Virus record (IMG/VR): IMGVR_UViG_3300008110_000030
Location: 1-64,000 of that record
Reading direction: 5' to 3' (one strand)
DNA length: 64,000 bases
Made by a program: the position numbers and the translations under genes. Below the pieces are notes generated by a model. The model did no database searches, was not told the origin of the DNA, and saw only the letters and a program-made list of their open reading frames with translations. Of the stretch, positions 19,962-58,945 are shown one piece after another (positions within the stretch are counted from its first letter, which is position 1; every line of letters begins with the position of its first letter).

Positions 19962-19962
19962 G

Positions 19963-30103: not shown

Positions 30104-30482
30104 TATCTATATTAATCGAACATCCAGTATCATTCTTGTTAACACCACTGAAGCAGAACAAGAGCAGGTTAGTGAATGGTTTAATCAAAATCAACTAGCA
30201 CAAGAGCTTTCAATTTATTTTTACAACAACGAACGAAATCTTCAGTGGTTGGTGATGTCATTTGCTGTGGCACAATATCGATACATTAACTTAGACAACA
30301 CTCAAGATCAAAGTGGCTTGTTAGCAGGACATTTTTTAAGTTCTGATAACTGTTATTACACTCTATCAGATGCTAACTTATATGAGGTATACAGATTAGT
30401 AAATACTTCACGGTTAGAATCAATAACTGAATTTTTAGATAAGGTAATATCAATTGAGCACCCTGAAACATCAGAACTGTGA
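30069..30482 (+). CDS. Hypothetical protein
   Basis: ORF overlapping both neighbours. Confidence 0.7.
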
Positions 30483-31674
30483 TTTTTGCGGCAAGGGCAA
30501 AGAAGACGTTGAAAAACTAGTCGTTGGATCTAACGGGTCTATATGCAATGAGTGTGTAACTCTGTGTGATAGGATCTTAAAAGATCAAAAGGGCAAGGTC
30601 AAAAATGACCACCTTAATCAATTCAATCCTGTCAGAATAAAAGAATATTTGGATGAGTTTATTGTAGGACAAGATGAAGCCAAAATATCTGTTTGTGTTG
30701 GAGTAAGTCAACACTATAAAAGAATTAGCAGTTATACCAGTTACGTTGATTTGGACAAAAGCAATGTGATGCTAATGGGTCCAACAGGGTGTGGGAAAAC
30801 TCTCATGGTAAAGAAGATTGCAGAGTTCATTGATGTTCCTTTCGCACACTGTGATGCAAACACACTGACTGAAGCAGGTTATGTTGGTGATGATGTAGAA
30901 ACAATAATTCAACAATTACTGCTCAGAGCTGACGGCGATATAGAAGCAGCCAGTCGTGGCATCATATATATTGATGAGATAGACAAAATAAGTAGGAAAG
31001 GCGAAGCCAATACTGCAACTAAAGATGTTGGCGGAGAAGGAGTACAGCAAAGTCTATTAAAAATGATTGAAGGTACTGTACTTAAAATACAGGTTGGCAA
31101 AAAACGTGAAGAAGTAGAAATAGATACTAAAAATATCTTGTTCATTGTTGGGGGTAGTTTTGTTGGACTTGAAAAAATTATTAATGATAGATTGAATCAT
31201 ACTGGGATTGGATTTAATAGTGCGTTAAAAAAGTCTTCGCAAACTAATTTGTTTTCCAAAGTGGATCAAAAGGATTTAATCACATATGGACTGATCCCAG
31301 AGTTTGTAGGTAGATTTAGTATCTTGACCACAGTTGATGATTTGACCAAAGAGGACTTAATCAAGATTTTGACAGTGCCTCGTAATAATCTAATTAATCA
31401 GTATAAGTATTTGTTTGATATGGATGGTTTAGAATTAGATTTTGAACCAGAAGCTCTAGAAGCAATTGCAGATAAAAGTATAGAATCTAAAACAAACGCT
31501 CGTGGCTTGAGAAGTACTTTAGAAAAATTATTAATACCTTATCAATTTGAAGCTCAAGAATTGGTCAAAAAAGGTCTAAAGAAAATATTGATAAGTAAAA
31601 ACACTGTGATTAAAGGAGAACTACCAATTTTTATGTTTAACCAGAGAAAGAAAGAAAATGCCAAAACAATATAA
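30454..31674 (+). CDS. clpX: ClpX ATP-dependent unfoldase
   Basis: CDFC/CNEC Zn domain, [26 protein letters not shown] loop. Confidence 0.95.
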
Positions 31675-33597: not shown

Positions 33598-34617
33598 ATG
33601 AGAATTGAAGACGAAGTCAAACTTGATTTTAAAGATGTATTAATTCGTCCTAAACGAAGTACCTTAAGTAGTCGTAAAGAAGTAGATTTAACTCGCAACT
33701 ATAAATTCAAACATAGTGGTACAGAATGGCACGGCGTTCCTATTATGGCATCAAACATGGACGGTGTTGGTACGCTGACCATGGCAGAAGCATTGTACGA
33801 ACACAGGATGTTTACCTGTTTGATCAAAAACTATGACGAAGATGATTTGGGCAGTACAGTAGGAAATATTGGTGGTAACTATTTTGCTATAAGCACTGGT
33901 ACTAGTGACAGTGACTTTTTAAAGTTACGACGAATTATCAATGCCTATCCAGAAATACATGTTATCTGTATTGATGTTGCTAATGGTTATCAAGAACGCT
34001 TTGGGGATTATGTGCAAAAAGTTAGAGAAACATTACTCCATTGTACAATTATTGCTGGTAACGTAGTTACAGCAGACATGACACAGGAGTTAATTTTACG
34101 TGGCGCAGATATTATTAAAGTTGGGATTGGGCCTGGCAGCGTTTGTACTACTCGTATCCAAACTGGTGTTGGGTACCCTCAGCTTAGTGCAATTATTGAG
34201 TGTGCCGATGCCGCTCATGGTCTTGGCGGTCATATTATTGCTGACGGCGGATGTACTTGCCCTGGTGATGTTGCTAAGGCTTTTGGGGCTGGTGCGGACT
34301 TTGTAATGCTAGGCGGTATGTTAGCAGGACATGATGAGGGTGGTGGTGAAATTAAAGATGGTAACGTTACATTCTACGGAATGAGTTCAGATACTGCTAT
34401 GGAAAAGCATCATGGAGGTGTTGCTAGTTATCGTAGTTCAGAAGGACGTACAGTAACCGTGCCACATCGAGGTGCTGTTGAAAATACAGTGTTAGATTTG
34501 CTTGGCGGAATAAGAAGCACTTGTACTTACGTAGGTGCCAATTCACTCAAACAACTGTCAAAGTGTACTACTTTTATCAAAGTAGGTAGACAAATAAATG
34601 ATATCTTTGTAAAATAA
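33598..34617 (+). CDS. guaC: GMP reductase
   Basis: [18 protein letters not shown]; [11 protein letters not shown]; IIADGG; FYGMSS. Confidence 0.95.
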
Positions 34618-39339: not shown

Positions 39340-39368
39340 TTGACTTATGAAATAAATATCATTATAAT
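39340..39368 (+). promoter_or_regulatory. sigma70 promoter
   Basis: TTGACT-17 nt-TATAAT. Confidence 0.75.
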
Positions 39369-39561: not shown

Positions 39562-41451
39562 ATGTCAAAGATCATCGGTATCGACCTCGGTACAACAAAC
39601 TCATGCGTAGCCGTTATAGAAAACGGAATCCCCAAAGTTATTGAAAATAGTGAAGGTGCTAGAACTACACCCTCAATTGTTGCCTACGCCAACAATGAAA
39701 TCTTAGTAGGTGCTACTGCAAAACGTCAAGCAGTAACAAATCCTAAAAATACAATCTATGCTAGTAAGCGTTTGATTGGACGTAAGTTTGAAGAACAAGC
39801 TGTACAAAAAGATATTGACCTAATGCCTTACAAAATTGTTCGAGCAGACAATGGTGATGCATGGATTGAAGCTAACAACGACAAACTTGCCCCACCACAG
39901 ATTTCGGCAGAAGTACTCCGCAAGATGAAAAAAACTGCGGAAGACTATCTTGGAGAAACTGTAACACAGGCAGTTATTACAGTCCCAGCTTACTTTAACG
40001 ACAGTCAACGTCAAGCAACAAAAGATGCAGGCAAAATTGCTGGCTTAGAAGTTCTACGTATTATTAATGAACCAACAGCGGCTGCACTTAGTTATGGTGT
40101 TGACAAAGCTGATAAAGCTGACAGGAAAATTGCTGTTTACGACCTTGGTGGTGGTACATTTGACGTAAGCATTATTGACATTGCTGATGTTGATGGTGAC
40201 AAGCAAATTGAAGTGTTATCAACCAACGGTGACACATTCTTAGGCGGTGAAGATTTTGACCAACGTATTATGGATTACTTGGTTGACGAATTTAAGAAAG
40301 AGCAAGGTGTTGATCTAAAGAAAGACATGTTGGCTCTACAACGTCTTAAAGAAGCAAGTGAAAAAGCTAAAATTGAATTATCAAGTTCAGCACAAACAGA
40401 TGTTAACTTGCCATACATTACAGCAGATGCAAGTGGTCCTAAACACATGGCAATTAAGTTGACTCGTGCTAAATTTGAATCAATGGTTGATGACCTAATT
40501 CAACGCAGTTTAGATCCATGCCGTCAAGCTATGAAAGATGCTAGTGTTACTGCCGCAGACATTGACGAAGTTATCTTGGTTGGTGGTCAAACACGTATGC
40601 CTAAGGTACAAGAAGAAGTTGAAAAACTTTTTGGTAAAGCTCCACGTCGTGATGTAAATCCGGACGAAGCTGTAGCAGTTGGTGCGGCAATTCAAGGTGC
40701 TGTTTTAGGTGGTGATCGTAAAGATGTTCTACTACTTGACGTTACTCCATTAAGTCTTGGTATTGAAACACTGGGCGGCGTAATGACCAAGATCATCCAG
40801 AAGAATACAACTATTCCTTCTAAAGGACAGCAAACATTCTCAACAGCTGAAGATAACCAGCCTGCGGTTACTATTAAAGTATTCCAAGGTGAGCGTGAAC
40901 TTTGCCAGCATAATAAAATGTTGGGAGAGTTTAATCTTGAAGGCATTGCTCCAGCTCGTCGTGGTCAGCCACAGATTGAAGTTACCTTTGACATTGACGC
41001 TAACGGCATCATGAACATTAGTGCTAAGGACAAGTCAACTGGAAAAGAAAACAAGATTACTATCAAATCAGATAGCGGTCTTAGCAAAGAAGAAATTGAA
41101 AAAATGATTCAAGAAGCTGAAGCAAATGCCGAAGCAGATAAAAAAGCACGTGAACTAATTGATTCTCGCAACAACGCAGAATCACAAGTACACTCTGTTA
41201 AGAAAGACTTAACAGAGTATGGTAGTAAAATCACTGAAGATGACAAGTCTAAAATAGAAACTGCTATTAAAACTGTAGAAGATTCTATTAAGGGCGACGA
41301 CACTGAAGTGATTACTAAATCAGTGACAGCATTGTTTGAAGCAATGACACCACTGATTCAAGCAAAGACTAGTACTGCTTCAGAAAGCAACAACAATAAT
41401 CAAGACGATGTTGTTGATGCTCAATACACTGAAACACCTAAGTCTGAATAA
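39562..41451 (+). CDS. dnaK: DnaK (Hsp70)
   Basis: [28 protein letters not shown]; full length. Confidence 0.98.
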
Positions 41452-41499
41452 GGCACCGTTAAGGGCCTAATTTGATTCTTACTTTAAAAGGAGATTATC

Positions 41500-41934
41500 A
41501 TGAATCAACTAAGAACTATAGATGCAGATACACTAACAAAAGCTCTAATTGGATTTGACACAATGTTTGACCAATTTGAACGTAGGTTTTCTAATTCAAT
41601 GAGTAATACATATCCTCCTCATAATGTTATCAAAATTGATGACAACAATTATGAGATTCAAGTGGCTGTAACTGGTTTTGGAAAAGATGATGTTACTGTT
41701 GAACTTGATCAGAACGTGTTAATTGTGACTGCTGGTAGAGATGTTGTTGAAGATGAAAAAACATATCTACACCGTGGACTTGCACAACGCAATTTTGTTC
41801 GCAACTTCCCACTTGCTGAGCATATTGAGGTTAAAGGTGCAGAACAAAAGAACGGCATCTTGTCTATTAGACTAGAGCGCATTGTTCCAGAAGCACTCAA
41901 GCCACGTCGAATTAACGTCACGTATTCAGAGTAA
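41500..41934 (+). CDS. Small heat shock protein (Hsp20/IbpA-like)
   Basis: YPPHNV, YLHRGLAQRNF.R.F.L, NGILSI.L. Confidence 0.92.
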   Translation: MNQLRTIDADTLTKALIGFDTMFDQFERRFSNSMSNTYPPHNVIKIDDNNYEIQVAVTGFGKDDVTVELDQNVLIVTAGRDVVEDEKTYLHRGLAQRNFVRNFPLAEHIEVKGAEQKNGILSIRLERIVPEALKPRRINVTYSE

Positions 41935-41939
41935 TTGGC

Positions 41940-41965
41940 AAAGGGGCCACTTGTGCCCCTTTGTT
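41940..41965 (+). terminator. Intrinsic terminator
   Basis: AAAGGGGC/GCCCCTTT stem followed by T-rich tract. Confidence 0.75.
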
Positions 41966-42006
41966 ATTTGTAGTATAATAAGTAAAAATAATATTTAGGA
42001 ACTTAA

Positions 42007-42309
42007 ATGGGTGAAATTGCTACCAAACAAAAAAGTCTAGTAACTACAGATCTAATTGAACCTAGAAAGTTCAAAGTGATTTTCTTTAATGATGATAAAA
42101 CTCCAATGGATTTTGTTATAGATTTGTTGATTAATTTATTCAATCATGACCAAACTAGTAGCAGTAAACTAACAATGGAAATTCACAATGAAGGGTCAGC
42201 AGTAGTTGGGATTTACCCTTATGAAATCGCCGAGCAAAAAGGAATTGAATCCACACACATTGCTCGTCAAGCAGGCTACCCATTATTGATTAAAGTTGAA
42301 TCGGAGTAA
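42007..42309 (+). CDS. clpS: ClpS N-degron adaptor
   Basis: KVIFFNDDKTPMDFV...IH.EG..VVG..P.EIAE.K...YPL. Confidence 0.92.
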   Translation: MGEIATKQKSLVTTDLIEPRKFKVIFFNDDKTPMDFVIDLLINLFNHDQTSSSKLTMEIHNEGSAVVGIYPYEIAEQKGIESTHIARQAGYPLLIKVESE

Positions 42310-42311
42310 CG

Positions 42312-42857
42312 ATGAGTTTACGAGAAATTACTAAAGATTTACATCACGAAGCAGAAATAACAAAATTTGCCAAGTTATTGCTAAGTGGAAAAATTGAAAA
42401 ATCTGATTATAAGAATTATCTATATAATCTAATGGCAGTATACGATCCAATCGAGTGGTACTGCAAACGTCAAGGTTTCCTTGACACAATGCCTACACTG
42501 CCAAGACTACATGCTATCCATGCAGACTTTGTAGAATTAGATGATGGCACATATTGTTATCTAACGCCAGCGGCTTTAGAATATCAAGCATACTTACATA
42601 AACTAGGCAATGATCCAGAACGTAAACATTTGGTTAAGGCGCATTTATATTGCCGCCATATGGGCGACCTATTCGGTGGTCAAATCATTAAGAAACAAGT
42701 AGCACACATTTCAAGTGGTAAATTTTACGACTTTGAAAATGCTGATGCTATGAAGATGTCTATTCGAGAAACACTCACAGATGATCTAGGAGATGAAGCT
42801 CGTGTGGCATTTGAATTTGCTATTAAGATGATGCGTGACTTATATGCAGGAGAGTAA
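42312..42857 (+). CDS. hemO: Heme oxygenase
   Basis: LRE.T...H..AE (axial His); AHLYCRHMGDLFGGQII. Confidence 0.9.
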   Translation: MSLREITKDLHHEAEITKFAKLLLSGKIEKSDYKNYLYNLMAVYDPIEWYCKRQGFLDTMPTLPRLHAIHADFVELDDGTYCYLTPAALEYQAYLHKLGNDPERKHLVKAHLYCRHMGDLFGGQIIKKQVAHISSGKFYDFENADAMKMSIRETLTDDLGDEARVAFEFAIKMMRDLYAGE

Positions 42858-43533
42858 AGTATGGGACACACTAATTGAGATCCAAGCTCTACTTGAGGAG
42901 TCGTTTGAAAAAACAGGAGTCGAAGTATTCGAACCTGGAATGGATCGTTTTAATCAACCTGGTTGGGTTAATCGTGTATGGTCTAGTGATAAGTATCGCC
43001 GGGCCCACGTTGATGTCGTTGATGCTAGGCTGACCAAAGGTCTTTGGATGATGCACTGTTGCATCTTCCCTCATACACACAATCCAGCACCAATTTACGG
43101 CTTTGATGTTATTGCTGGTAAGAACAAAATTACTGGTTGTTTCCACGACTATAGTCCTGCTGGCGACAAAAATCATCCTATGATAGAATGGTTTGGTCAA
43201 GAAGTTAGCAAGTTAGAGTGGCGCAGAGAACGAGCACTTCCTGATTGGGCTCAGCGTATTTTTACCAAGCACATGGTGGCGGCAGGCAATGTTCAAGATG
43301 AAACTGAGTTACAACAAATTACAGATCTTGCTAAAACTACAGTAGAACACTATCTCAGTACTGTTGCAGAAACTAATAATACAGTGCCTGATACTACATT
43401 TGAGCAAGACTACTACGCACAAAATCAAAAACAAAACCCACATACTCCTAGAGTTATGGTTAGTTTAGGGCTTTCAGAGGACGATGTCAAGCATTTCATA
43501 CAAGAATGTCTATTTCCCGAAATTGGTAAATAA
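42844..43533 (+). CDS. pcyX: Ferredoxin-dependent bilin reductase, PcyA/PcyX type
   Basis: RAHVDVVDAR..KGLWMMHCCIFP...PIYGFDVIAG..KITGCFHDYSP; LPDWAQRIF; QKQNPHT. Confidence 0.8.
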   Translation: MQESKVWDTLIEIQALLEESFEKTGVEVFEPGMDRFNQPGWVNRVWSSDKYRRAHVDVVDARLTKGLWMMHCCIFPHTHNPAPIYGFDVIAGKNKITGCFHDYSPAGDKNHPMIEWFGQEVSKLEWRRERALPDWAQRIFTKHMVAAGNVQDETELQQITDLAKTTVEHYLSTVAETNNTVPDTTFEQDYYAQNQKQNPHTPRVMVSLGLSEDDVKHFIQECLFPEIGK

Positions 43534-43539
43534 TACATT

Positions 43540-45315
43540 ATGCGTTTAGATGAATTTCAATTAGCAGGGCAAATGCCCTCCAATATACAAAGAGCTGTTC
43601 CTGTAACAGCTCAACCTTCTCAACCAGCAGTTGGTTCAGCTGGCGGTAACTCTTTAGAAGATAGCTTGGTAAAATTCGTTGATAAGGCTGACGATTTTCC
43701 AGATGACTCACCTGTTCATGCTTATGTAAACAGCGTACTTAAAACAATTTTATCTTACATTCCAGATATTACGATACGTGAGAATTCAGCAACAAATCAA
43801 TCATCTTTAGATGACACTAATCGTTCGTTATTGGAAGACCTCTTTCCTTATCTATCACAACTTAGTGAAGATTCTAGAAATACCCTTAAGGACTCGATTG
43901 ACGGTGCAATACTTACATTAGAGCAAAAACAAAAACTTAGCGGTGAACTTTATAAGATTAAGGGTGCTAAAAAAGCCTTTACTAAACAGAATGTAACAAT
44001 TCAATTAGACACCAAAGGCAACATTGCAAAGATGGATGCTGATATTGAAGCAACTGCTAGACAATTTGCCAAAGACTTTAAACTACCATTAAAATGGGCA
44101 CGTAACTTAATTGGCATGTTTGAGGTCAATATCACTAGAGAACAAAGAAAAGAATTCTTAATAGCCTGTAGAGCTGGTACTGCGCTTGATGTTGGTAAAA
44201 TGATCAATGACGGCGAAGGTCGTGTTGAAGACTATGTTTTGTTAGAACAGCCAGAACTTAAGGAAGTTTATAACAGTGTTAAAGACACGCTCCTAGACAT
44301 CAGTTTAAGTACAGGTCAACGCGGAGCAACTGGTCCATTTGAAGCCATGATGGCCATCATGGGCGGATGTAAAAAACCTGGTATAAACGAGGGTGGTGAT
44401 TTAAAGTATAAAGATTTAAAACTTGAAGTTAAAGCAACCTCAATTAGTGCTGTAACTGAATCTGCTACAGCAGGTAAAGCTAATTCTGCTTGGTTAGATT
44501 CTACAGCAGGTAAAGAAATATCAGGATCAACACTGAGAAGTGTGGCAAATGATTGGTTAGATAATTATGCTACAGAAGCAAGAACAAACAAAGCATTCCA
44601 AGATTCTTGGAAGAAAGCTGATTTCAGACCAGCAGGTCTTGAAAGTTTAAAACAGTGTTTAGTTGATCTTAGAAGTGTAGAAGGAGTTCCTGTTGCTCCA
44701 GCTAAGAAATTAATCAAATATATGATGGGAACTATGTTTCCAAGTATAGTGAAATTACAAAATGAAGGTTATGATTTTGACGCATCTTGTATGAGAATAC
44801 TAACTGCAATTGGTAAGTTAGATACAAGCTCTATTGCTAAAGAACAAGGAGTTATGGCTTTATTAGAATATATAACTGGAAAAGGAAATGACGGTTTTGT
44901 ATTCTTTAATCCATCAACTCAGAAATTCAAAATTGTTATGGGAGTAAAAGGTGTACTAGAAGAACTCAAATCAAAAAACGGTTCCAACCTACATTTTGAT
45001 AGTACCATGACCATGGGTAAGTCTGCAAAAGCCAGTCCAGGAATATATTATGGTGCAAAACCAAACTCGCCCGAAGGTATAGAATATCTAAAGAAATTTA
45101 ATTCAAGTCCAGAACGTGTAGCTCAATTAAAACAAATAGAAGCAGATAAAGCAGCCGCAAGAGAAAATAAATCATTAGCCATGATTCAAGCCGCCAAAGA
45201 AGGCGAGTCAGAATTTGAATTTGATGGTAAAATGTATGCTGTTTCTAAAGCCGCTTTAAAGAAGTATTTTGAGCCTGACATGCCAATCTCCAGAACCAAA
45301 AAGAAAACCCGTTAA
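43540..45315 (+). CDS. Large hypothetical protein with a PD-(D/E)xK-like motif
   Basis: GPFE...GGDL.....LEVK; starts MRLDEF; TAAATA at 43527-43532. Confidence 0.65.
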   Translation: MRLDEFQLAGQMPSNIQRAVPVTAQPSQPAVGSAGGNSLEDSLVKFVDKADDFPDDSPVHAYVNSVLKTILSYIPDITIRENSATNQSSLDDTNRSLLEDLFPYLSQLSEDSRNTLKDSIDGAILTLEQKQKLSGELYKIKGAKKAFTKQNVTIQLDTKGNIAKMDADIEATARQFAKDFKLPLKWARNLIGMFEVNITREQRKEFLIACRAGTALDVGKMINDGEGRVEDYVLLEQPELKEVYNSVKDTLLDISLSTGQRGATGPFEAMMAIMGGCKKPGINEGGDLKYKDLKLEVKATSISAVTESATAGKANSAWLDSTAGKEISGSTLRSVANDWLDNYATEARTNKAFQDSWKKADFRPAGLESLKQCLVDLRSVEGVPVAPAKKLIKYMMGTMFPSIVKLQNEGYDFDASCMRILTAIGKLDTSSIAKEQGVMALLEYITGKGNDGFVFFNPSTQKFKIVMGVKGVLEELKSKNGSNLHFDSTMTMGKSAKASPGIYYGAKPNSPEGIEYLKKFNSSPERVAQLKQIEADKAAARENKSLAMIQAAKEGESEFEFDGKMYAVSKAALKKYFEPDMPISRTKKKTR

Positions 45316-45390
45316 GTATTAATTTACTAAGCATTTAATTTATCGCTCTACTACCGTTAAATAATAATGACGGTAATCGGAGAGCGAGCA

Positions 45391-45936
45391 ATGAAAAAAC
45401 AAATGTATGCCTTTATGCTATTGGCATGGGTAAGTGCTATTCATTCGGCACCATTGAATGACTTTCAATTTAAAAGTCCTGCATTCAATGGAGTTGGTTA
45501 TAGTTCACATGTACTAACCATAGAAAATCAAGAACGTACACGTCAAAACGAACGTGCAGATAAACTACAGGCTGAAATTGACAAAGCAATTTCAGATAAG
45601 AAAAACACGAATCTTGCTAAGTTTGTTAGTAACTTAGAATCGCGTATCTACGCACAGATTAGCCAAAACGTAGCAACTGCTATGTTTGCCAATAATAATT
45701 GTACAGCAAGTAGCAACACAAACTGTTCAGGGAATATTGATTTCCAAGGAAACTATATTAGTTGGAGCAAGGTATTAAGCTCTGATGATTCAAACTGTTC
45801 TACAGCATATGGTTCTTGCATCATGTTGAGAATAGCAGATCCTACAGCAACGAACCCAACAACAGCACCTTGTAATTCTGATGGTGTATCTTGTATCTAT
45901 GTGCCACTAAGTTCATTCCAAATGCCAGGGAATTAA
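45391..45936 (+). CDS. csgF: Curli assembly protein CsgF-like
   Basis: Signal peptide then FQFKSPAFNG; F...LESRIYAQISQ; adjacent to csgG. Confidence 0.75.
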   Translation: MKKQMYAFMLLAWVSAIHSAPLNDFQFKSPAFNGVGYSSHVLTIENQERTRQNERADKLQAEIDKAISDKKNTNLAKFVSNLESRIYAQISQNVATAMFANNNCTASSNTNCSGNIDFQGNYISWSKVLSSDDSNCSTAYGSCIMLRIADPTATNPTTAPCNSDGVSCIYVPLSSFQMPGN

Positions 45937-45939
45937 CCC

Positions 45940-47190
45940 ATGAAAAAGACTATTATATCTTTGGCAATCGTAAGTATGCTTTCTGGCTGTGCAATTTTGC
46001 AGTCAACAGGAGAGTTTGATAAAACTCCAGAACTGACTACTCAGATGAAAGGTGTTAAGAAAGAGTTTGACACCATTCCAAGTCCATCAGCTGGTAGACC
46101 ATTAAGTGTTGCTGTATACAGTTTTACTGATAAAACGGGTCAACGTAGACCACAGGCTAATATTGCCAGTTTAAGTTCAGCAGTTACACAAGGCGCAGAA
46201 TCTTTTCTAATTCAAGCACTACAAAATGTAGGTCAAGGACAATGGTTTGATGTTGTAGAAAGAGTAGGCATTGATAACCTGACTAAAGAACGATTAATTA
46301 TTCGCCAGATGCGTGAAGCATACGAAGGTAAAGATGCTAAACCATTACTACCAATGCAGTTTGCAGGCATTATTATTGAAGGCGGCATTGTAGGCTATGA
46401 CTCTAGCACAACTAGTGGTGGTGTTGGACAACGTATTTTTGGTATTGGAAAACAAACACAATGGTCCACTGATAGGGTTACCGTAAGTTTACGAGCAGTT
46501 AGCGTAAACACTGGCAAAGTATTAGCCACAGTGACTACTCAAAAGACTATAATGAGTTCAGCAGACAGTGTGTCTGCATTAAAATTCTTTGATGCTGGAA
46601 CACAGGCGTTTGAAGCTGAGGCAGGTTTAACCATAAACGAGCCAGGTACATACGCTGTAAAGGCAACAATTGAAATGGCAGTAGTTGAATTAATTAAAGA
46701 AGGACAACGCAAGGGAGTATGGGATTACAAGACAGTGGTTAAAGAATCACCACCTGTATCAATCGCACCACCCCCACAGGCAGCTCCAGTGATTAGCAGT
46801 GAAGTAAGACAGAAAGAAGAAATTAAAGTAGAGGAGAAGAAAGATGTCGTGGTTCAATCACAAACCCAATCCGAAACGAAAACAGAAGCCGCACCCAGTG
46901 CCTCCACAGAAGTAAAAAAAGAGACACTTAAGGACGGTGCAGAACTAAAAGTAACAGCAATGCAAACTGGGGTAAAACCAACAATAGATCTTTTTGGTGC
47001 TAGGTATTTAAAAGAAGATTCATTTGTATATAAAGAAGCAAACGAAAAAAGTCAGCGAACTTGGCTATTAAAGAAAGGCACTGAATTATACATTATTACT
47101 CCAGGACCAGAAGGTTGGCACCAAGTAAGAGACGCAGAGAAGCGTAAAGGTTTTGTCAAGAATTCAGTACTCGGAACTGACAAACCATAA
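45940..47190 (+). CDS. csgG: Curli secretion channel CsgG with C-terminal extension
   Basis: Lipobox LSGC; AVYSF.DKTGQ; SAVTQGA; WFDVVER.G..NL..ER.IIR. Confidence 0.92.
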   Translation: MKKTIISLAIVSMLSGCAILQSTGEFDKTPELTTQMKGVKKEFDTIPSPSAGRPLSVAVYSFTDKTGQRRPQANIASLSSAVTQGAESFLIQALQNVGQGQWFDVVERVGIDNLTKERLIIRQMREAYEGKDAKPLLPMQFAGIIIEGGIVGYDSSTTSGGVGQRIFGIGKQTQWSTDRVTVSLRAVSVNTGKVLATVTTQKTIMSSADSVSALKFFDAGTQAFEAEAGLTINEPGTYAVKATIEMAVVELIKEGQRKGVWDYKTVVKESPPVSIAPPPQAAPVISSEVRQKEEIKVEEKKDVVVQSQTQSETKTEAAPSASTEVKKETLKDGAELKVTAMQTGVKPTIDLFGARYLKEDSFVYKEANEKSQRTWLLKKGTELYIITPGPEGWHQVRDAEKRKGFVKNSVLGTDKP

Positions 47191-47288
47191 AGATAGCGAG
47201 TACGGAGGAACGTAGAGGTAAACTTAATTTAATGGCCGTAGGCCAAGGAGCGTGGTTGGAGAATATATAATCCAATCGTGTATAAAAG

Positions 47289-48263
47289 ATGGACAAAAGA
47301 AACAAAGGCGTTGGTAAGTTGTCGAGAAAATTACTTACAATTCTGGTGTTGTCTGGAATGGCAACATTGGGTCATGCGGCTGATAACAGCATCTACATTG
47401 ATCAAGCAGGTGACAACAGCACAATTACTATGACACAAGATGGTGCTGGTAATAAAGTAAAAGGCATTTTGTCAAGCGGTGTTGCTGGAGGTACTACAGA
47501 TCCTGCTAAACTTACTGGCAATGCTCAAACAGTTAACATTGAGCAAACTGGTGCAACCAACGTCTTGGCATTGGGAGTTAATTCAACGCAAGGTGGTTTA
47601 GTACAAGGATATGCTAACATAGGTGTGAATTTAAACTATCAAGTAAGTGGTGGTGGAAACACTGGTTATATTAACATTAATAACAATGGTCAAGGAACTG
47701 CAATTGGTAATGTGGTCAGTATTATACAAAGTGGTGGCGGTGGAACAGCAACACTTAACATGACTGGAACTAGTAATCAATTGACTGTTGGTCAGAGTGG
47801 TGGTGCTAACAATACATTTATAGGCACAATCAATGCTGACGAAACTGTAGCAACTGTAAGTAACACACTAGGTGGTGGTAATACTACAACATTAGACATG
47901 ACTGGAAATAAAGGTCAAGTTAGTGTTACAACAACAGGCACTACAAATACAACAAGCGTGACACAAAGCGCATTTGGATCAACTGGTGCGCAAGTACTAG
48001 TTAACATTGATGGTTCAGGCAATAATACAACTGTTACACAAAGTGGTATGTATGATCACTATGCTAGTCTAAGTGTAGTTGGCAGTGGTAATAACTTTAC
48101 AATAGCACAGTCTGGTGGTTCTGCAACTGGACATTCTGCTACATTGTCTGTAACTGGAAGTACAAACACTGTTGGTATCACACAGCAAGGATCAGTTGCC
48201 AATCTAACCAACATGGCAGTAAATGGTAGTAATAATACATACACTATACTACAGAAAAATTAA
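47289..48263 (+). CDS. Curlin-repeat protein (CsgA/CsgB-like)
   Basis: Signal peptide; many Q-x-G-x-x-N repeats. Confidence 0.8.
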   Translation: MDKRNKGVGKLSRKLLTILVLSGMATLGHAADNSIYIDQAGDNSTITMTQDGAGNKVKGILSSGVAGGTTDPAKLTGNAQTVNIEQTGATNVLALGVNSTQGGLVQGYANIGVNLNYQVSGGGNTGYININNNGQGTAIGNVVSIIQSGGGGTATLNMTGTSNQLTVGQSGGANNTFIGTINADETVATVSNTLGGGNTTTLDMTGNKGQVSVTTTGTTNTTSVTQSAFGSTGAQVLVNIDGSGNNTTVTQSGMYDHYASLSVVGSGNNFTIAQSGGSATGHSATLSVTGSTNTVGITQQGSVANLTNMAVNGSNNTYTILQKN

Positions 48264-48272
48264 GAGGTTGGA

Positions 48273-49379
48273 ATGAACGTATGGCTAGCAATATTACTTG
48301 TTTCGTTACTGCACACATCAAATGCTCAAGCGGCAATTGGTAAAGTAACGGAACAGGTAAACATACCTCCTACAATTCAACGAGATAAATCAACCCTAAC
48401 TGGCAGCAAAGGTACAGGTGTTGAGATGAATGACTCAATTAAAACTTCTCAAGGCAAAGTGGGCATTACCTTTGAAGATGATACCCGTGTACAAGTAAAC
48501 GAAAACAGTAAACTGGTTATTGATGACTTTGTTTATGATCCAAAAACCAAAGCAGGTAAACTAGGTGCTAAGATTGCACTAGGTACTGTACGCTATGCTA
48601 GTGGACAGATTGCTAAGAATAGTCCACAGAGTGTAAACCTTAATACACCTAGTGCTACTGTAGCAGTTCGTGGTACGGACTTTACAGCCACAGTAGACGA
48701 ACTTGGTGAGAGTACAATTATTCTACTACCTAGTTGTCCTAACGATAGACCTACACGTACAGTAAAAGACATTGAAGCAAGTTGTAAAACTGGTGTAATT
48801 GAAGTCAGCAATGACGTGGGCACTGTAATATTAAATCAACCGTTCCAAGTAACTAAAGTACAGAGCAGAACACAACCTCCTACTCCACCTAAAACACTGG
48901 AGTTATCTGAAATGGCTATCAGTAACTTGATAATTTTGAGTCCTCCAAAAGAAGTTAAGCAAGCTCAAGAAGAACAGCGTAAAGTGTTTAATCCTTTAGA
49001 CATAGATTTTCTAAAAGAAAAAGGATTAGAGAACTGGCTTGATATGCAAGCTGGAGTTATCTACGAAGACAAACTAAAGAAAAACTTTTTGGATAACGAT
49101 TTCCTAGCCAGCTTATTTGACATTATTGGTAATCAATTGGATCAAAAATTCTTAGACCCAGTAGATCCTGTACTACCTGACTACAAGAGAGCTACTGGTA
49201 TCGTTGCCTACAAAGATGATACGAGTATTGAATTGTGTAGAGATAGTGGTGCTGACATACAGTGTGTTAAAACTCCTTTAACACAGAACAGTACAATCTT
49301 CCAAACACAAGGTAGTTTAGAGTTTAAGAATCGTGTTAATCAAGGCGGTAATACTATCATTACCTTAATACAAAGATGA
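48273..49379 (+). CDS. FecR-domain periplasmic protein
   Basis: ITFEDDTRVQVNENSKLVI; TPSATVAVRGTDF. Confidence 0.85.
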   Translation: MNVWLAILLVSLLHTSNAQAAIGKVTEQVNIPPTIQRDKSTLTGSKGTGVEMNDSIKTSQGKVGITFEDDTRVQVNENSKLVIDDFVYDPKTKAGKLGAKIALGTVRYASGQIAKNSPQSVNLNTPSATVAVRGTDFTATVDELGESTIILLPSCPNDRPTRTVKDIEASCKTGVIEVSNDVGTVILNQPFQVTKVQSRTQPPTPPKTLELSEMAISNLIILSPPKEVKQAQEEQRKVFNPLDIDFLKEKGLENWLDMQAGVIYEDKLKKNFLDNDFLASLFDIIGNQLDQKFLDPVDPVLPDYKRATGIVAYKDDTSIELCRDSGADIQCVKTPLTQNSTIFQTQGSLEFKNRVNQGGNTIITLIQR

Positions 49380-50644: not shown

Positions 50645-51334
50645 TTATACCTTAAATAACCATTTCTTTGTTATGTGTAATCTTGCCTTGTTGTACTGAA
50701 CAGCAGTAATAACTAGAGCAACTGCCCAAGGTACAATAGTAGCGGCCCAAGGAACTAATCCTGCCCACCACGTAGCCATTAATGGTTCTTTCATCAACAT
50801 TAACATAGCCACGGCAAACAAGACAAACGATCCTACAAATACTGTGTCAGGATATTTTTCTAGTATCTTACTAACTAGGCCAGCACCAAACAAAATAATT
50901 GGCACACTGATTAACAAGCCAGCAATTACTAAAACAAAACTTCCATTAGCGGCTGCGGCAATACCTAGTGCGTTGTCTATGCCCATAACAGCATCGGCAA
51001 CTACGATAGTACCAATAGCACCCCAAAAGGTGTCCTTGGCTTCTATGTTATGCTCGTCATGTGTAAATGCTAACTTCCAACCAATCCATAACAATGCAAG
51101 AGCACCTATTGCTCTAAGTCCAGGAATTAGTAATAGGTAAGTTAATGCGGCTACAGATATGAAGCGTATTGCGATGGCACCAAAGGTACCCCAAAAGATT
51201 GCTTTCTTGCGCAAGTGATCTGGTAGTTTATTAGCTGCCATTCCAATAACAAGAGCGTTATCGCCAGCTAATACAATGTCTATCAAAATGATAGCTAAAA
51301 ATGCCCAAAGGGCCTGAAGCGTAAAGAGTTCCAT
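50645..51334 (-). CDS. TerC/Alx family membrane protein (YjbE type)
   Basis: DIVLAGDNALVIGMA; ADAVMGIDNAL; GLLISVPII. Confidence 0.92.
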   Translation of the reverse strand: MELFTLQALWAFLAIILIDIVLAGDNALVIGMAANKLPDHLRKKAIFWGTFGAIAIRFISVAALTYLLLIPGLRAIGALALLWIGWKLAFTHDEHNIEAKDTFWGAIGTIVVADAVMGIDNALGIAAAANGSFVLVIAGLLISVPIILFGAGLVSKILEKYPDTVFVGSFVLFAVAMLMLMKEPLMATWWAGLVPWAATIVPWAVALVITAVQYNKARLHITKKWLFKV

Positions 51335-52006: not shown

Positions 52007-52299
52007 TTAAGAAAATCTTATTAATTCTATTGGTCTGCTTACCCAGTCTAGTTAACGCCCAATTCCAATACGATTATCCATTGTTGTGCGACCGCACTGC
52101 AAAGATCATACAAAGTCTCGGGGACGACTGGAAAGAAACGCTGACTTGGAGTGGAAAACACATCAGTGACAACAGTGTCTACAGTCTGTGGACCAATGAA
52201 AAAAATGGATCATGGACCCTATTAAAGATGACTTCAGAAGTTTCGTGTATACTTGGAACGGGTAGCGAATCAAAAGTAAACTTAGGAATGCCTATATAA
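52003..52299 (+). CDS. Small secreted protein
   Basis: Signal peptide, two Cys. Confidence 0.7.
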   Translation: MIKKILLILLVCLPSLVNAQFQYDYPLLCDRTAKIIQSLGDDWKETLTWSGKHISDNSVYSLWTNEKNGSWTLLKMTSEVSCILGTGSESKVNLGMPI

Positions 52300-54341
52300 T
52301 GATTAAGAAAATTTTATTAAGCCCTTGGACTGCTCTATTAACACTGGCGTTAGTAGTGGGCATACGTGCGGCAGACCCCACATTCGTTGAAAGCGTAAGA
52401 CTACGCTACTTTGATACCTTAATTACTGCTAAGGAACCAACATTCAACAATATTGTAACAGTAAATATTGATGAAGCTAGCTTGGACAAGTATGGACAAT
52501 GGCCATTGCCAAGGACTGAATATGCCAAAATTATACGAGATCTATATCAGAGGGGAGCAGGACTTGTTGTACTTAATGTGCTCATGCCAGAGTCAGACCG
52601 TACAGGTGGCGACAGTGCGTTGGGTCAAACTCTAAAAGAATTTCCAGTAGTGCTAGGGTCAGTTCCTAGCAACAAAACAAAAAATACTCCACGTGCCCCA
52701 GGGTCAGCAGTATTAGGCCCAGAGCATTTGGATCAAATTATTCGGTATCCAGGTCTAATTGCCAATGTGCCATTGCTAGAAAATTCGGCGGCAGGAGTTG
52801 GCATAGTTTCAACACTACCTGAAGTAGACGGTGTTAATCGTAGATTACCTCTTATCGTCACTGTTGATGGTAAATTATATCCAAGCATAGCTATGGAAAC
52901 GCTCCGCATTGCGGCTGGCGATAGCACCTTTCAAGTAAAACTATTTGAGGGCGGTGTTGAAAAAATGCGTATACCTAAATTTGGTCCTGTTACTACAGAC
53001 AATTTGGGTCGTATATGGATTGACTGGAGTCAGCAAAATAGAAACTTTAGTTTAACTACATTACCAAAAGATTTAGAAGGTGCAATTGTCATCGTAGGCC
53101 CAACAGCCGCAGGTATTAGTAATCCAGTACCAACAAGTAAAGGGGCAGTATTTCCACACGAAGTACAAGCCGCAGTTATTGGTACAATGGTAAACGGAGT
53201 TGTAATTGAACGTCCTGATTATGCAGATGGCGCAGAGATTATAGCATTATTAGCATTTGGTTTATTATTAATTTTCTTATCGAGGTGGACTTATGTTGGC
53301 ATTTGTGCTACTGTGGTTATTGTTGGTGCCGTCGTTCCTGGTACTATGTACGCTTTCACTAATTGGCTCATCCTATCAGACGCGACTGCAATCACGTTTG
53401 GGCTTATTATCGTTGCTCTTCATACTTATGGCGTTAAGTTTGTAAGCGAGTTCTTACAGAAGCAGGCAATTAAGAAACAATTTGAGGGATATGCAAGTCC
53501 TACAGTAGTTAAACTACTACAAGAAAATCCAGACATCATCAAGAACGGAACTAAACGTGAAGTATCTATAGTGTTTTCAGACCTACGTGGATTTACTCCA
53601 TTAGGTGAAAGTTTTGGTGATGACGTTAAAGGTCTAACTGAAGTTATGAACGGCTACATGGATGCTATTACACAACCTGTACTAGATGCAGATGGTATGA
53701 TTATCAAGTACATTGGTGATGCAAGTATGCATATTCATAATGCACCTATTGATGATCCTGACCATGCTAAGACAGCAGTAGCTACTGGACTTAAAATGTT
53801 GAAAGCTGTTAAAAAGTTCAGCATTGAATTAGAGGCTAAAGGACGTCCAGGAGTCAAGATGGGTGCTGGTATCAATACTGGTTTAGGTTATATTGGCGAG
53901 ATGGGATCAACTCGTCGTCATTCATATGATGTACTAGGTGATGCAGTGTCAACAGCCGCACGTATTGAAAGCAAGTGTAAAGAATATGGATGCGTATTAT
54001 TAGTTGGCGGTGCAACTGTGGAACAATGTGGTGATGATTTCTTCTTCTTAAAAGTAGATGACCTGGCTGTTAAGGGTAAGAGTGTGGGAGTTGCTATCTA
54101 TACAGTATTAGATGATGTTACTGCTGAGTATCATGTGAGTAAAAAGATACATGATGCTATGCATAATGCATATAGATCACAAAAATTTAACATGGCTATC
54201 AGTATGTGCAAACAACTTAGAGATCAGTTTGACAGTAGATTGACTGGTTACTATGACATGTGGATAGAACGTTGCGAGTTCCAATTAACACAAACATTGC
54301 CTGAGGATTGGAACGGCGTGTTTATAGCAACTTCTAAATAA
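52299..54341 (+). CDS. CHASE2-domain class III adenylate/guanylate cyclase
   Basis: V.IDEASL..YGQWP.PR (CHASE2); TM helices; FSDLRGFT, KYIGDA, GINTG, DVLGDAVSTAAR. Confidence 0.92.
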   Translation: MIKKILLSPWTALLTLALVVGIRAADPTFVESVRLRYFDTLITAKEPTFNNIVTVNIDEASLDKYGQWPLPRTEYAKIIRDLYQRGAGLVVLNVLMPESDRTGGDSALGQTLKEFPVVLGSVPSNKTKNTPRAPGSAVLGPEHLDQIIRYPGLIANVPLLENSAAGVGIVSTLPEVDGVNRRLPLIVTVDGKLYPSIAMETLRIAAGDSTFQVKLFEGGVEKMRIPKFGPVTTDNLGRIWIDWSQQNRNFSLTTLPKDLEGAIVIVGPTAAGISNPVPTSKGAVFPHEVQAAVIGTMVNGVVIERPDYADGAEIIALLAFGLLLIFLSRWTYVGICATVVIVGAVVPGTMYAFTNWLILSDATAITFGLIIVALHTYGVKFVSEFLQKQAIKKQFEGYASPTVVKLLQENPDIIKNGTKREVSIVFSDLRGFTPLGESFGDDVKGLTEVMNGYMDAITQPVLDADGMIIKYIGDASMHIHNAPIDDPDHAKTAVATGLKMLKAVKKFSIELEAKGRPGVKMGAGINTGLGYIGEMGSTRRHSYDVLGDAVSTAARIESKCKEYGCVLLVGGATVEQCGDDFFFLKVDDLAVKGKSVGVAIYTVLDDVTAEYHVSKKIHDAMHNAYRSQKFNMAISMCKQLRDQFDSRLTGYYDMWIERCEFQLTQTLPEDWNGVFIATSK

Positions 54342-55818: not shown

Positions 55819-55893
55819 CTGGCGATAGTTCAACGGATAGAACAGTAGCCTTCTAAGCTATTAATCCAGGTTCGATTCCTGGTCGCCGGACCA
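55819..55893 (+). tRNA. tRNA-Arg(TCT)
   Basis: GTAGC-CTTCTAA-GCTAT, CCA; TAAATA at 55807-55812. Confidence 0.93.
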
Positions 55894-58798: not shown

Positions 58799-58883
58799 GC
58801 CTGCATGGTGAAATCGGTAAACACAGCAGACTTAAAATCTGCCGGAGAAATCCTTCCCAGTTCGATTCTGGGTGCAGGCACCA
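58799..58883 (+). tRNA. tRNA-Leu(TAA)
   Basis: GCAGA-CTTAAAA-TCTGC, CCA. Confidence 0.93.
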
Positions 58884-58893
58884 AAATACATAG

Positions 58894-58922: not shown

Positions 58923-58945
58923 ATAGAACACTTTACAAGGACATT

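Follow-up and report, generated by a model that had tools for sequence, protein, structure and literature searches.

A predicted haem-to-phycoerythrobilin gene pair in a giant freshwater phage without photosynthesis genes, and candidate pigment-binding repeats in its tail-fibre-like proteins

The window analysed comprises 64,000 nucleotides and is the start of a 214.6-kb contig of a freshwater jumbo myovirus (IMGVR_UViG_3300008110_000030), for which a complete relative of 383 kb was identified. The core of the locus is a haem oxygenase gene, hemO (42312-42857, +, 181 aa), overlapping a bilin reductase gene, pcyX (42844-43533, +, 229 aa from the ATG, or 232 aa from an alternative GTG at 42835). 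The ATG is the start used by gene callers elsewhere, as P0001, a protein of 229 aa, is 100% identical. The two genes overlap by 14 nt (ATG start) or 23 nt (GTG start), and hemO starts 2 nt after clpS (42007-42309, +), a Clp protease adaptor gene (PF02617, E 3.9e-25; NCBIfam ClpS models match below their cut-offs) that is the first of the tightly packed clpS-hemO-pcyX-ORF591 run. The observation in the earlier note, an overlapping haem oxygenase and bilin reductase directly after clpS with no photosynthesis genes in the window, is confirmed.

HemO matches Pfam Heme_oxygenase PF01126 at E 3.2e-22 (79.8 bits against a cut-off of 23), covering profile positions 6-203 of 204, although the protein is short and has no NCBIfam match. 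HO-1 and HO-2 structures in the PDB match at 1e-11 to 1e-10, with His11 aligned to the proximal His of Synechocystis HO-1 and the G-D-L-x-G-G-Q motif conserved. His11, Arg115 and the G118-D-x-x-G-G-Q124 motif are invariant in 79 homologues. The predicted reaction is haem to biliverdin IXalpha plus Fe2+ plus CO, the alpha regiospecificity being inferred from sequence alone.

The reductase matches Fe_bilin_red PF05996 at 54 bits against a cut-off of 31. The solved marine enzyme PcyX_EBK42635 (PDB 5OWG) is matched at E 6.8e-68 with about 55% identity, whereas the best PcyA reaches only 3.4e-15 and no PebS, PebA or HY2 was hit at E<0.01. Asp57, His71 and Asp88 correspond to PcyX Asp55, His69 and Asp86, residues defined in PMC13446030 (Table 2) and PMC11480375; the D/H/D pattern is conserved in 81 of 81 PcyX-clade sequences, whereas three cyanophage PcyAs have E/H/D, with Glu (PcyA Glu76) at the first site. 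The score on the NCBIfam PcyA equivalog (NF002760) is 87 bits against a cut-off of 206. The phylogeny proposed as a check in the earlier note places the reductase with pelagiphage PcyX (Mosig), apart from cyanophage PcyA, with support 100. The predicted reaction is a 4-electron reduction of biliverdin to phycoerythrobilin; this product is predicted from residues, and rests on 55% identity and one diagnostic residue. No close relative was identified in one genome for each of 185,579 prokaryote species, in a pattern-based search that reaches close relatives only, and a nucleotide search of 41400-45400 against 50,697 phage records returned no match.

Upstream of clpS lie dnaK (39562-41451, +; Hsp70, phrog_22485 at E 1.9e-279), which begins the conserved block, and hsp20 (41500-41934, +; PF00011 at E 2.2e-18, phrog_432 at E 7.9e-37). 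A sigma-70-like promoter was identified upstream of dnaK at 39340-39368 (+; TTGACT, 17-nt spacer, TATAAT; 11 of 12 positions) and a terminator-like hairpin between hsp20 and clpS at 41936-41966 (+; 12-pair stem with 6 G-C pairs followed by a T-rich tail). Both are consensus matches only, although the hairpin suggests that clpS-hemO-pcyX-ORF591 is a separate transcription unit from dnaK-hsp20. Downstream, CsgF-like, CsgG-like and curlin-repeat genes (45367-48263, +; PF10614 at 7e-07, PF03783 at 2.7e-46 and PF07012 at 8.9e-07) form the end of the block and imply a diderm host.

ORF591 (43540-45315, +) starts 6 nt after pcyX and is a fast-evolving gene without Pfam, PHROG or NCBIfam match; a 325-650 aa ORF fills this slot in most loci. 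It was considered as a bilin-binding candidate and rejected, since it has no conserved Cys and its invariant E268, D287, E296 and K298 (an E...D...E-x-K pattern) look nuclease-like, suggesting a PD-(D/E)xK-like core. Its AF2 model (pLDDT 72) gave no informative match: Foldseek found nothing and a structure search (VIA) matched only a generic N-terminal helix bundle at Z about 8.

The block DnaK-Hsp20-ClpS-HemO-PcyX recurs in about 75 of 79 related viral contigs: dnaK in 73 of 79 loci (74-97% identity), hsp20 in 74, clpS upstream of hemO in 76, and the Csg-type genes in 42-54. Among loci where both genes could be read, hemO and pcyX overlap by 4-59 nt (typically 8-29) in 77 related loci plus the window, a pairing that is not chance; the single exception is L068, a related locus where an inserted ORF separates them. 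PcyX is highly conserved, with a median pairwise identity of 80% (range 69-100), as high as DnaK, whereas HemO has a median of 45% (range 32-99) and falls into discrete types about 40% identical to each other. Between two of the related loci, L002 and L003, nucleotide similarity disappears exactly over hemO. Incongruence between HemO type and the PcyX tree is suggestive only, because this tree is poorly resolved. The pathway was identified in 314 IMG/VR contigs and more than 6,000 protein clusters, and is a strongly conserved core feature of an abundant freshwater jumbo-phage lineage.

The element is a phage, with portal, baseplate hub and tail-fibre genes. No Photo_RC match was found in the whole contig, in ten related contigs or in the complete 383-kb relative. 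Fer2, GAF, CpeT, CpeS, AmoC/PmoC and AlaS-type aminotransferase were also absent from the contig, and those of them searched in relatives, including the complete genome, were absent there too. The search for GAF and lyase genes suggested in the earlier note therefore found none, and a methanotroph-phage (pmoC) identity is not supported. The closest bacterial DnaKs are from Burkholderiales (70-76% identity), with which this phage's DnaK groups, the phage copies forming one clade with support 100; the closest cultured carrier of a PcyX pair infects Pelagibacter. A cyanobacterial host, which would have contradicted the earlier note, is thus not indicated, and the host is probably a betaproteobacterium.

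Outside the window, two giant tail-fibre-like genes of the same genome, gp2853 (contig positions 80381-88942) and gp3381 (203788-213933), together carry nine tandem helical units of about 120 residues, six of them with a C-x-R-D motif and three lacking the Cys. C, R and D are invariant in 12 of 12 aligned units; the motif is present in 22 of 29 distinct units and in 20 of 21 well-scoring ones, although Cys makes up only 0.35-0.44% of these proteins. A profile of 12 units searched against 177,635 PDB sequences gave phycocyanin alpha as the top 16 hits (best E 0.0015), aligning the motif to the K-C-A-R-D-I-G-Y-Y region and its Cys to Cys84. This similarity is marginal (E 0.0015-0.02) and concentrated in one helix; a single-sequence PDB search with two units found nothing at E<=10, and an ESM Atlas feature search gave recognition below threshold and mixed hits. 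Pfam Phycobilisome PF00502 scored 27.6 bits (cut-off 22.2, E 3e-6) on a relative's 3225-aa protein, but gave no hit at E<=1 on gp2853 and does not detect the domain in this genome's own proteins. In six-frame searches single units scored 13.8-19.3 bits in two relatives (G004 and G006), and the only hit in this genome, 13.8 bits in an unrelated 82-aa ORF at contig positions 182610-182738, was not reproduced by hmmscan and is taken as chance.

The fold of the unit, known from a predicted AF2 model only (pLDDT 77, pTM 0.74), matches phycobiliproteins. The top ~50 Foldseek hits are all phycobiliproteins (probability 0.84-1.0 in the rows shown, TM 0.65-0.70 for the better-aligned half, about 3 A over about 110 residues), and the top 10 hits of an exhaustive structure search (VIA) are bilin-binding globins (photocobilin, phycoerythrin, allophycocyanin and the ApcE bilin domain; Z 8.4-10.5), although helical bundles give middling Z scores easily. 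The units begin at about phycocyanin residue 39 in profile and structure alignments; the N-terminal X-Y helices for alpha-beta heterodimer formation are lacking, and the units are modules inside giant proteins rather than stand-alone subunits of about 160-170 aa.

Units were identified in 7 of 7 large PcyX-bearing contigs, and the one complete genome found through the motif with a degenerate DNA pattern also carries the FDBR block. Of 50 IMG/VR contigs tested for co-occurrence, 48 are fragments estimated at 9-49% complete, and the 12 largest contigs with units but no FDBR also lack clpS, so they do not cover the region. Among 50,697 cultured phage records the unit hits 100 records, 99 of them cyanophages by name and one an unclassified marine virus record, in proteins annotated as tail fibre or virion structural protein. 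In S-PM2, Sf-CH3 and ACG-2014j, three of the five examined, the giant gene sits just downstream of cpeT and/or pcyA. Literature searches for phycobiliprotein-like domains in phage tail fibres returned nothing relevant.

The interpretation in the earlier note is supported: the genes are a phage HemO/PcyX-type pair, and the role of such pairs in phages of non-cyanobacterial hosts is unresolved in the literature (PMC11480375). Its two functional suggestions, iron release from haem for Fe-S and 2OG enzymes or a chromophore for an unidentified bilin-binding protein, remain inferences; the second gains concrete candidates from the C-x-R-D units, the first only circumstantial support. What the sequence shows or strongly supports is a translationally coupled phage gene pair, in a block conserved across the lineage (dnaK-hsp20 | clpS-hemO-pcyX-variable ORF-csgF-csgG) of a freshwater jumbo myovirus of about 350-380 kb, the products of the pair being predicted to open haem and reduce biliverdin by four electrons, most likely to phycoerythrobilin, with electrons from a host ferredoxin because the lineage encodes none of the plant type. 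What is inferred is the purpose, together with any bilin binding: the pigment itself, not only the iron, would be made as a chromophore or cofactor for the giant tail-fibre-like proteins of the phage, a reading to which a probability of about 0.4 is given. In phycobiliproteins Cys84 of the C-x-R-D motif makes the thioether, and Arg86 and Asp87 contact the chromophore. No bilin lyase is encoded, so attachment would be autocatalytic, as reported for bacterial BBAG globins (PMC10151467), or non-covalent. As speculation, the neighbouring chaperone and Clp genes may serve the folding and quality control of these 2,800-4,700-residue proteins.

Several points weigh against this reading. No experiment shows bilin binding, and hemO-pcyX is not adjacent to the giant genes, which lie about 40 kb and 160 kb away. 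Pelagibacter phage Mosig has hemO-pcyX but no such unit, therefore the link is not universal and marine PcyX must have another use or another target. The units could also be a lineage-specific structural module shared with cyanomyoviruses by descent, which would explain the distribution without any bilin.

The iron (and haem) economy explanation remains a live rival, although a less likely one. In this view host haem is degraded to free Fe2+ for the iron enzymes of the phage, and PcyX only pulls the reaction by removing biliverdin, which inhibits haem oxygenase turnover, the bilin being a by-product. The window encodes at least six radical-SAM / [4Fe-4S] enzymes, two of them B12-binding, in a cluster at 6610-21042 (-), with PF04055, PF13353 and PF02310 matches at 6610-7551, 8014-9087, 9379-10995, 11603-13234, 13785-14807 and 19963-21042. 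In Mosig the pair sits directly after four 2OG-Fe(II) oxygenase genes and a putative ferrochelatase gene, and 2OG-Fe(II) oxygenases also lie next to pcyA and the giant genes in cyanophages. An iron-supply role has been discussed (PMC11480375), and this reading explains Mosig. However, if iron were the point HemO should be the constrained partner, whereas HemO is replaced or diverged to about 40% identity while PcyX stays at about 80% with the PEB-type Asp invariant. A two-electron or any other bilin reductase, or none, would serve to clear biliverdin, and no ferritin or Fe-S assembly link was found in a non-exhaustive search.

A host-directed effect is doubtful. The pathway could load or starve a host bilin or haem sensor (such as a bacteriophytochrome, which uses biliverdin), produce CO or supply an antioxidant bilin during infection. 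The likely host group, Burkholderiales, includes photoheterotrophs and bacteria with bacteriophytochromes, a freshwater phage PcyA can load a phytochrome in E. coli (PMC11480375), and the pair lies among genes that manipulate host proteostasis and signalling (ClpS, ClpX, ClpP, DnaK and a CHASE2 cyclase). Nevertheless no host target is known for this phage, whose host is only inferred, phycoerythrobilin lacks the C15=C16 double bond and cannot support phytochrome photoconversion, the phage encodes no GAF/PHY protein, and this reading gives no reason for the C-x-R-D units. Least likely is a reductase that is functionally a PcyA (a blue product, phycocyanobilin, rather than the pink phycoerythrobilin) or of another regiospecificity, as the 'PcyA/X' of freshwater jumbo phage CB_2 proved to be a true PcyA and the present enzyme is also from a freshwater phage and only 55% identical to the characterised PcyX, since the activity of CB_2 was attributed to its lacking the PcyX-specific Asp55 (PMC11480375), which is present here and invariant in 80 relatives, the equivalog score is far below the cut-off and PcyX is the best solved relative by more than 50 orders of magnitude in E-value.

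Why phages of non-photosynthetic bacteria make a light-harvesting pigment has been open since PcyX was described, and recent papers still list iron supply, phytochromes or unknown globins (PMC11480375). In this locus selection falls on the reductase and its PEB-type active site rather than on the iron-releasing enzyme, and the same genomes encode, inside tail-fibre-like proteins, repeated domains with the sequence motif and predicted fold of the bilin-binding core of phycobiliproteins, which gives the pigment a testable phage-encoded target. A wider reading, unlikely on present evidence but not excluded, is that giant tail-fibre proteins of this lineage and of marine cyanomyoviruses are biliproteins, with arrays of truncated phycobiliprotein-like globin domains covalently binding phage-made (or host-made) bilin at the C-x-R-D cysteine. 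If so, the phage bilin genes (hemO/pcyX here; ho1, pebS, pcyA and cpeT in cyanophages) would serve, at least partly, to pigment the virion rather than to support host light harvesting, and a chromophore in the fibre could give a physical basis, and a candidate photoreceptor, for the unexplained light-dependent adsorption of cyanophages (10.1101/167650). If the units do not bind bilin, the locus simply extends the already known HemO-PcyX cassette family to a further freshwater case.

Among the closest known systems is the marine viral HemO-PcyX cassette (PcyX_EBK42635; also in cultured Pelagibacter phage Mosig EXVC030M, MT647606), with the same two-gene overlapping arrangement, reductases 51-55% identical to the present one, the same Asp/His/Asp residues and neither host nor phage with phycobiliproteins. 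The present example differs in coming from fresh water, in a jumbo phage rather than a T4-like pelagiphage of about 140 kb, with dnaK-hsp20-clpS as neighbours instead of 2OG-Fe(II) oxygenases and a ferrochelatase, and with C-x-R-D units. The ho1 and 'pcyX-like' (PcyA/X) genes, with or without vAlaS, of large freshwater phages (Chen et al. 2020, 10.1101/2020.02.13.942896; PMC11480375) also belong to jumbo phages of non-cyanobacterial hosts with adjacent haem oxygenase and FDBR genes and with B12/radical-SAM genes in the same genomes; here no pmoC and no AlaS-type gene was found in the 214.6-kb contig, and the characterised CB_2 enzyme lacks the PcyX Asp and makes phycocyanobilin whereas the present one keeps the Asp.

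Cyanomyoviruses carry phage-encoded bilin genes (ho1, pebS, pcyA, cpeT), found only in myoviruses (PMC10452541), and the same C-x-R-D globin units in their giant tail-fibre-like proteins. Their hosts have phycobilisomes, so the accepted view is that these genes support host light harvesting; their FDBRs are PcyA (Glu) or PebS, only 22-29% identical to this one, and they carry psbA and ferredoxin, which this phage lacks. Finally, the pre-PcyA / BBAG (bilin biosynthesis-associated globin) clusters of heterotrophic bacteria (PMC10151467) combine a haem oxygenase and an FDBR of the PcyA/PcyX branch with phycobiliprotein-like globins carrying a CXRD motif, in non-photosynthetic organisms, and those globins bind bilin without a lyase. 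There the globins are small stand-alone proteins encoded next to the FDBR, whereas here the globin-like units are truncated, tandemly repeated inside 2,800-3,400-residue tail-fibre-like proteins and unlinked to hemO-pcyX.

Two overlapping genes were identified on the + strand. The first (42312-42857, 181 aa) encodes a haem oxygenase, matching Pfam PF01126 at E 3.2e-22 over almost the whole profile. The second runs from 42844 (ATG; an upstream GTG at 42835 is also open) to 43533 and encodes a ferredoxin-dependent bilin reductase (FDBR), matching PF05996 at 54 bits against a cut-off of 31. ClpS (42007-42309) ends 2 nt before hemO. The observation of the earlier note, an overlapping haem oxygenase and bilin reductase directly after clpS with no photosynthesis genes in the window, is therefore confirmed as written.

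The window is the first 64 kb of an IMG/VR virus record of 214,617 bp, estimated 61% complete and with 37% G+C. The organism is a tailed phage, with a portal (phrog_213 at E 1e-106), a baseplate hub, several tail-fibre genes, an SbcC-like nuclease and ORFs of 2,853, 3,381 and 4,747 codons. The window alone contains 23 tRNA genes, 20 of them in a dense array at the contig start (206-4743, - strand) and three more at 55819-55893 and 58799-59030, which fits an AT-rich phage infecting a host with different codon usage. The portal is closest (47-50% identity) to those of jumbo myoviruses of Proteobacteria: Sinorhizobium Phosso, Pseudomonas PA5oct, Agrobacterium Atu_ph07 and Serratia BF. Near-identical DNA was identified in lake and other freshwater metagenomes from 16 studies. 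Contigs from river and freshwater RNA libraries include a 275-nt piece identical to hemO (42388-42662) and pieces of relatives across hemO-pcyX, which shows presence in RNA libraries but does not prove transcription. The phage DnaK is 70-76% identical to that of Burkholderiales (Rhodoferax, Limnohabitans, Rubrivivax and Polynucleobacter) and the phage copies form one clade next to that order, so that a betaproteobacterial host is a lead and no more. The curli-secretion-like genes at 45367-49379 (CsgF-like, CsgG-like with a C-terminal SH3 domain, and a curlin-repeat protein, followed by a FecR-domain protein) are conserved downstream of pcyX in most relatives and fit a diderm host. A 128.8-kb relative carrying the same DnaK-to-PcyX block (G056, the record behind locus L292) is classed as 'provirus' by IMG/VR, and host flanks, if they exist in the source contig, could identify the host. 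Other cell-like genes in the window are a TerC-family membrane protein (50645-51334, -), a CHASE2-sensor adenylate/guanylate cyclase (52299-54341, +) and a GMP reductase/IMPDH-family enzyme (33598-34617, +).

The best solved relative of the reductase is PcyX_EBK42635 (5OWG), at E 6.8e-68 and about 55% identity over the full length, while PcyA structures reach only E 3e-15 and no PebS, PebA/B or HY2 appears. PcyX is distinguished from PcyA by Asp in place of Glu76 (PcyX Asp55), together with the shared His and Asp (PMC13446030, Table 2; PMC11480375). The window protein has Asp57/His71/Asp88 at these positions, as do all 79 related viral loci and Pelagibacter phage Mosig, whereas three cyanophage PcyAs have Glu. 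The NCBIfam PcyA equivalog scores 87 bits against a cut-off of 206, and in a tree the freshwater sequences and Mosig PcyX separate from cyanophage PcyA with support 100. The enzyme was therefore filed as PcyX-type, with phycoerythrobilin as its predicted product. This prediction is an inference, and a freshwater phage enzyme (CB_2) that lacks the Asp turned out to be a true PcyA (PMC11480375). The haem oxygenase is short, but keeps the proximal His (His11) and the distal G-D-x-x-G-G-Q motif, both invariant in 79 homologues.

PcyX relatives at 78-89% identity occur on 314 IMG/VR contigs, and the protein database holds more than 6,000 clusters. In the 79 best loci the order DnaK-Hsp20-ClpS-HemO-PcyX-(variable ORF)-CsgF-CsgG-curlin is kept, with ClpS present in 76, Hsp20 in 74 and DnaK in 73. 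More distant members keep the same order, including a complete 383,411-bp genome whose PcyX is 69% identical. Overlap of hemO with pcyX, by 4-59 nt, was identified in 77 related loci as well as in the window, which argues for translational coupling; the exception is locus L068, a relative in which a 515-codon ORF (4503-6050) is inserted between the two genes. A terminator-like hairpin (41936-41966) separates dnaK-hsp20 from the tightly packed clpS-hemO-pcyX-ORF591 run. The last of these, ORF591 (43540-45315), occupies a slot filled in most loci by a fast-evolving ORF of 325-650 aa that always starts a few bases after pcyX. Its only invariant residues (G265, E268, G286, D287, E296, K298 and Y444) suggest a PD-(D/E)xK-like core, but it matches no family and no informative fold match was found.

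PcyX is as conserved as DnaK (pairwise median 80%, minimum 69%), whereas HemO is not (median 45%, minimum 32%). In the related loci L002-L080, HemO occurs as at least four sequence types (clusters of 35, 18, 3 and 2 distinct sequences) that are only about 35-45% identical to each other and are scattered over the PcyX tree, an incongruence that is suggestive only because that tree is poorly resolved. All of them sit in the same slot (about 5450-6010 in each locus; 42312-42857 in the window) and keep the catalytic residues, while the flanking ClpS and PcyX genes stay collinear. Between loci L002 and L003, DNA similarity of 67-84% on both sides vanishes exactly over hemO, which looks like cassette replacement by recombination, and both HemO types keep the catalytic residues. 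This is read, by inference, as stronger constraint on the reductase, and hence on the final bilin, than on the iron-releasing step.

The whole contig lacks photosystem reaction-centre genes, plant-type [2Fe-2S] ferredoxin, GAF domains, CpeT and CpeS lyases, PmoC and AlaS-type aminotransferases. Ten related contigs of up to 280 kb lack Photo_RC, Fer2 and GAF, and the complete 383-kb relative lacks Photo_RC, Fer2, CpeT and CpeS. No close PcyX was found in one genome for each of 185,579 prokaryote species. The closest cultured carrier of the pair is Pelagibacter phage Mosig (51% identity), whose host is a heterotroph and in which the pair follows four 2OG-Fe(II) oxygenase genes and a putative ferrochelatase gene. 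A cyanobacterial host with phycobiliproteins, named beforehand as a condition that would refute the earlier note, is thus not indicated. The note's interpretation of the genes as a phage HemO/PcyX pair is supported, whereas its two proposed functions, iron release from haem or a chromophore for a bilin-binding protein, remain inferences.

A candidate acceptor was identified outside the window. In a search of relatives for phycobiliprotein-like genes, sub-threshold Pfam Phycobilisome matches were found inside giant ORFs, and on the full 3,225-residue protein of one relative (G006; locus L180, 4243-13920, -) the family scores 27.6 bits, above its gathering score of 22.2 (E 3e-6). This fibre-like protein has six CBM_5_12 carbohydrate-binding modules at its N-terminus, ahead of six C-x-R-D units, and BFVD relatives combine the unit with collagen repeats, ChiC_BD or ConA-like lectin domains. 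The matched stretches are tandem all-helical units of about 120 residues with the core motif C-x-R-D-[VI]-G-x-[IL]-x-D-A-x-x-Y-D-L-x-x-G-G. The phage studied here has two units in gp2853 (contig 80381-88942, Cys1433 and Cys1552) and seven in gp3381 (contig 203788-213933), four of the latter with C-x-R-D. Pfam does not see the domain in these proteins of its own genome, and an 82-aa ORF at contig 182502-182750 gives only a weak, sub-threshold Phycobilisome match (13.8 bits) that hmmscan did not reproduce and that is probably chance. Both gp2853 and gp3381 match giant tail-fibre PHROG families (phrog_9851 at E 7e-195, plus phrog_5342 and phrog_4527), and gp3381 ends in a domain like the long-tail-fibre distal subunit.

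A profile of 12 units searched against all PDB sequences returned phycocyanin alpha chains as the top 16 hits (best E 0.0015), with the Cys-x-Arg-Asp of the unit lying on Cys84-x-Arg86-Asp87, the bilin attachment site, and with allophycocyanin hits extending through the following helices. This similarity is marginal by E-value and strongest over one helix. An AlphaFold2 model of one unit (29-sequence alignment, pLDDT 77, pTM 0.74) found only phycobiliproteins among the top ~50 Foldseek matches, with probability 0.84-1.0 in the rows shown and, for the better-aligned half, TM 0.65-0.70 and about 3 A over about 110 residues. In an exhaustive alignment against 48,161 chains the ten best are all bilin-binding globins (photocobilin, phycoerythrin, allophycocyanin and the ApcE bilin domain, Z 8.4-10.5), although the fold is a prediction and helical domains easily reach middling Z scores. 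C-x-R-D is present in 20 of 21 well-scoring units, while cysteine makes up only 0.35-0.44% of these proteins.

The unit profile hits all seven large PcyX-bearing contigs, with 3-12 units each and always in ORFs of 2,200-4,400 codons, but does not hit Mosig. A degenerate DNA pattern for the motif, with about 0.001 matches expected by chance, finds at least 120 stretches in IMG/VR. Most of these lie on fragments of jumbo phages estimated at 9-49% complete, on which co-occurrence cannot be scored, and the single complete genome among them carries the hemO-pcyX block. No contig was found that covers the clpS region yet lacks the pair; the 12 largest contigs with units but no FDBR also lack clpS. 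Among 50,697 cultured phage records a two-unit query hits 100, of which 99 are by name cyanophages (Synechococcus and Prochlorococcus myoviruses) and one is an unclassified marine virus record. The hits fall in proteins annotated as tail fibre, short tail fibre or virion structural protein, and BFVD fold matches show the same picture. This restricted distribution could reflect shared ancestry of a structural module with cyanomyoviruses rather than bilin use. The cyanophage units keep C-x-R-D. Of five cyanophage giant genes inspected, three lie just downstream of a cpeT-like bilin-lyase homologue (S-PM2, Sf-CH3 and ACG-2014j), one of these (Sf-CH3) lies directly after pcyA, and four lie after a 2OG-Fe(II) oxygenase gene. 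Genes of the latter family recur immediately next to phage bilin genes and immediately upstream of the giant C-x-R-D proteins in marine myoviruses (loci of Mosig, Sf-CH3, S-PM2, S-H9-1 and S-RIM32). A review notes that among cyanophages only myoviruses carry HO, PcyA and CpeT, and PebS with a single podovirus exception (PMC10452541).

What the sequence shows is a coupled HemO/PcyX pair of a kind that can convert haem to a reduced bilin using host reductant; the activity of these two proteins, the identity of the product and its binding are inferred. In the preferred reading, to which a probability of about 0.4 is given, the bilin, probably phycoerythrobilin, is the selected product and is bound by the C-x-R-D globin units of the giant fibre proteins of the phage. 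Binding would be autocatalytic or non-covalent, since no lyase is encoded. Caveats are that the giant genes are 40 kb and 160 kb away from hemO-pcyX and that the contig is incomplete. The role of the pigment there (structural cofactor, light absorption, photoprotection or sensing) would be a matter of conjecture; phycoerythrobilin is fluorescent and cannot photoisomerise at C15. The phage carries a full proteostasis set, with ClpX (30454-31674), DnaK, Hsp20 and ClpS (39562-42309) and ClpP (contig 71898-72545), and as a speculation the chaperone and protease genes adjacent to the pair could serve maturation of these very large proteins.

The rival that survives best, although considered less likely, is iron release for the many Fe enzymes of the phage. 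An operon-like run at 6610-21042 (- strand) holds at least six radical-SAM / 4Fe-4S enzymes, two of them with B12-binding domains (the best NCBIfam match is KedN5-type C-methyltransferase, far below its cut-off), and is possibly a modification or natural-product pathway. Together with the oxygenase-rich context in Mosig this gives the iron reading circumstantial support. That reading is the better explanation for Mosig, which lacks the units, but it does not explain why PcyX, and not HemO, is the conserved partner. A host-directed effect of bilin, CO or biliverdin is more doubtful. A PcyA-like product instead of phycoerythrobilin is the least likely, and concerns the colour of the product and not its purpose.

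The hemO-pcyX cassette, its occurrence in phages of heterotrophs and in large freshwater phages, and the open question of its role are all published (PMC11480375, PMC13446030, PMC10151467). No report was found in the searchable literature, where absence does not prove novelty, of the conserved dnaK-hsp20-clpS-hemO-pcyX block of this abundant freshwater lineage, of the contrast between conserved PcyX and exchanged HemO types, or of the phycobiliprotein-like C-x-R-D repeat units in giant tail-fibre-like proteins of these phages and of cyanomyoviruses, with cpeT or pcyA next door in the latter. A parallel that also supports the relationship of the units to phycobiliproteins is found in bacteria: CXRD is the chromophore-binding motif of phycobiliproteins and of the bacterial BBAG-1/-3 globins, and those BBAGs bind bilins without lyases and are encoded with pre-PcyA reductases and haem oxygenases in non-photosynthetic bacteria (PMC10151467).
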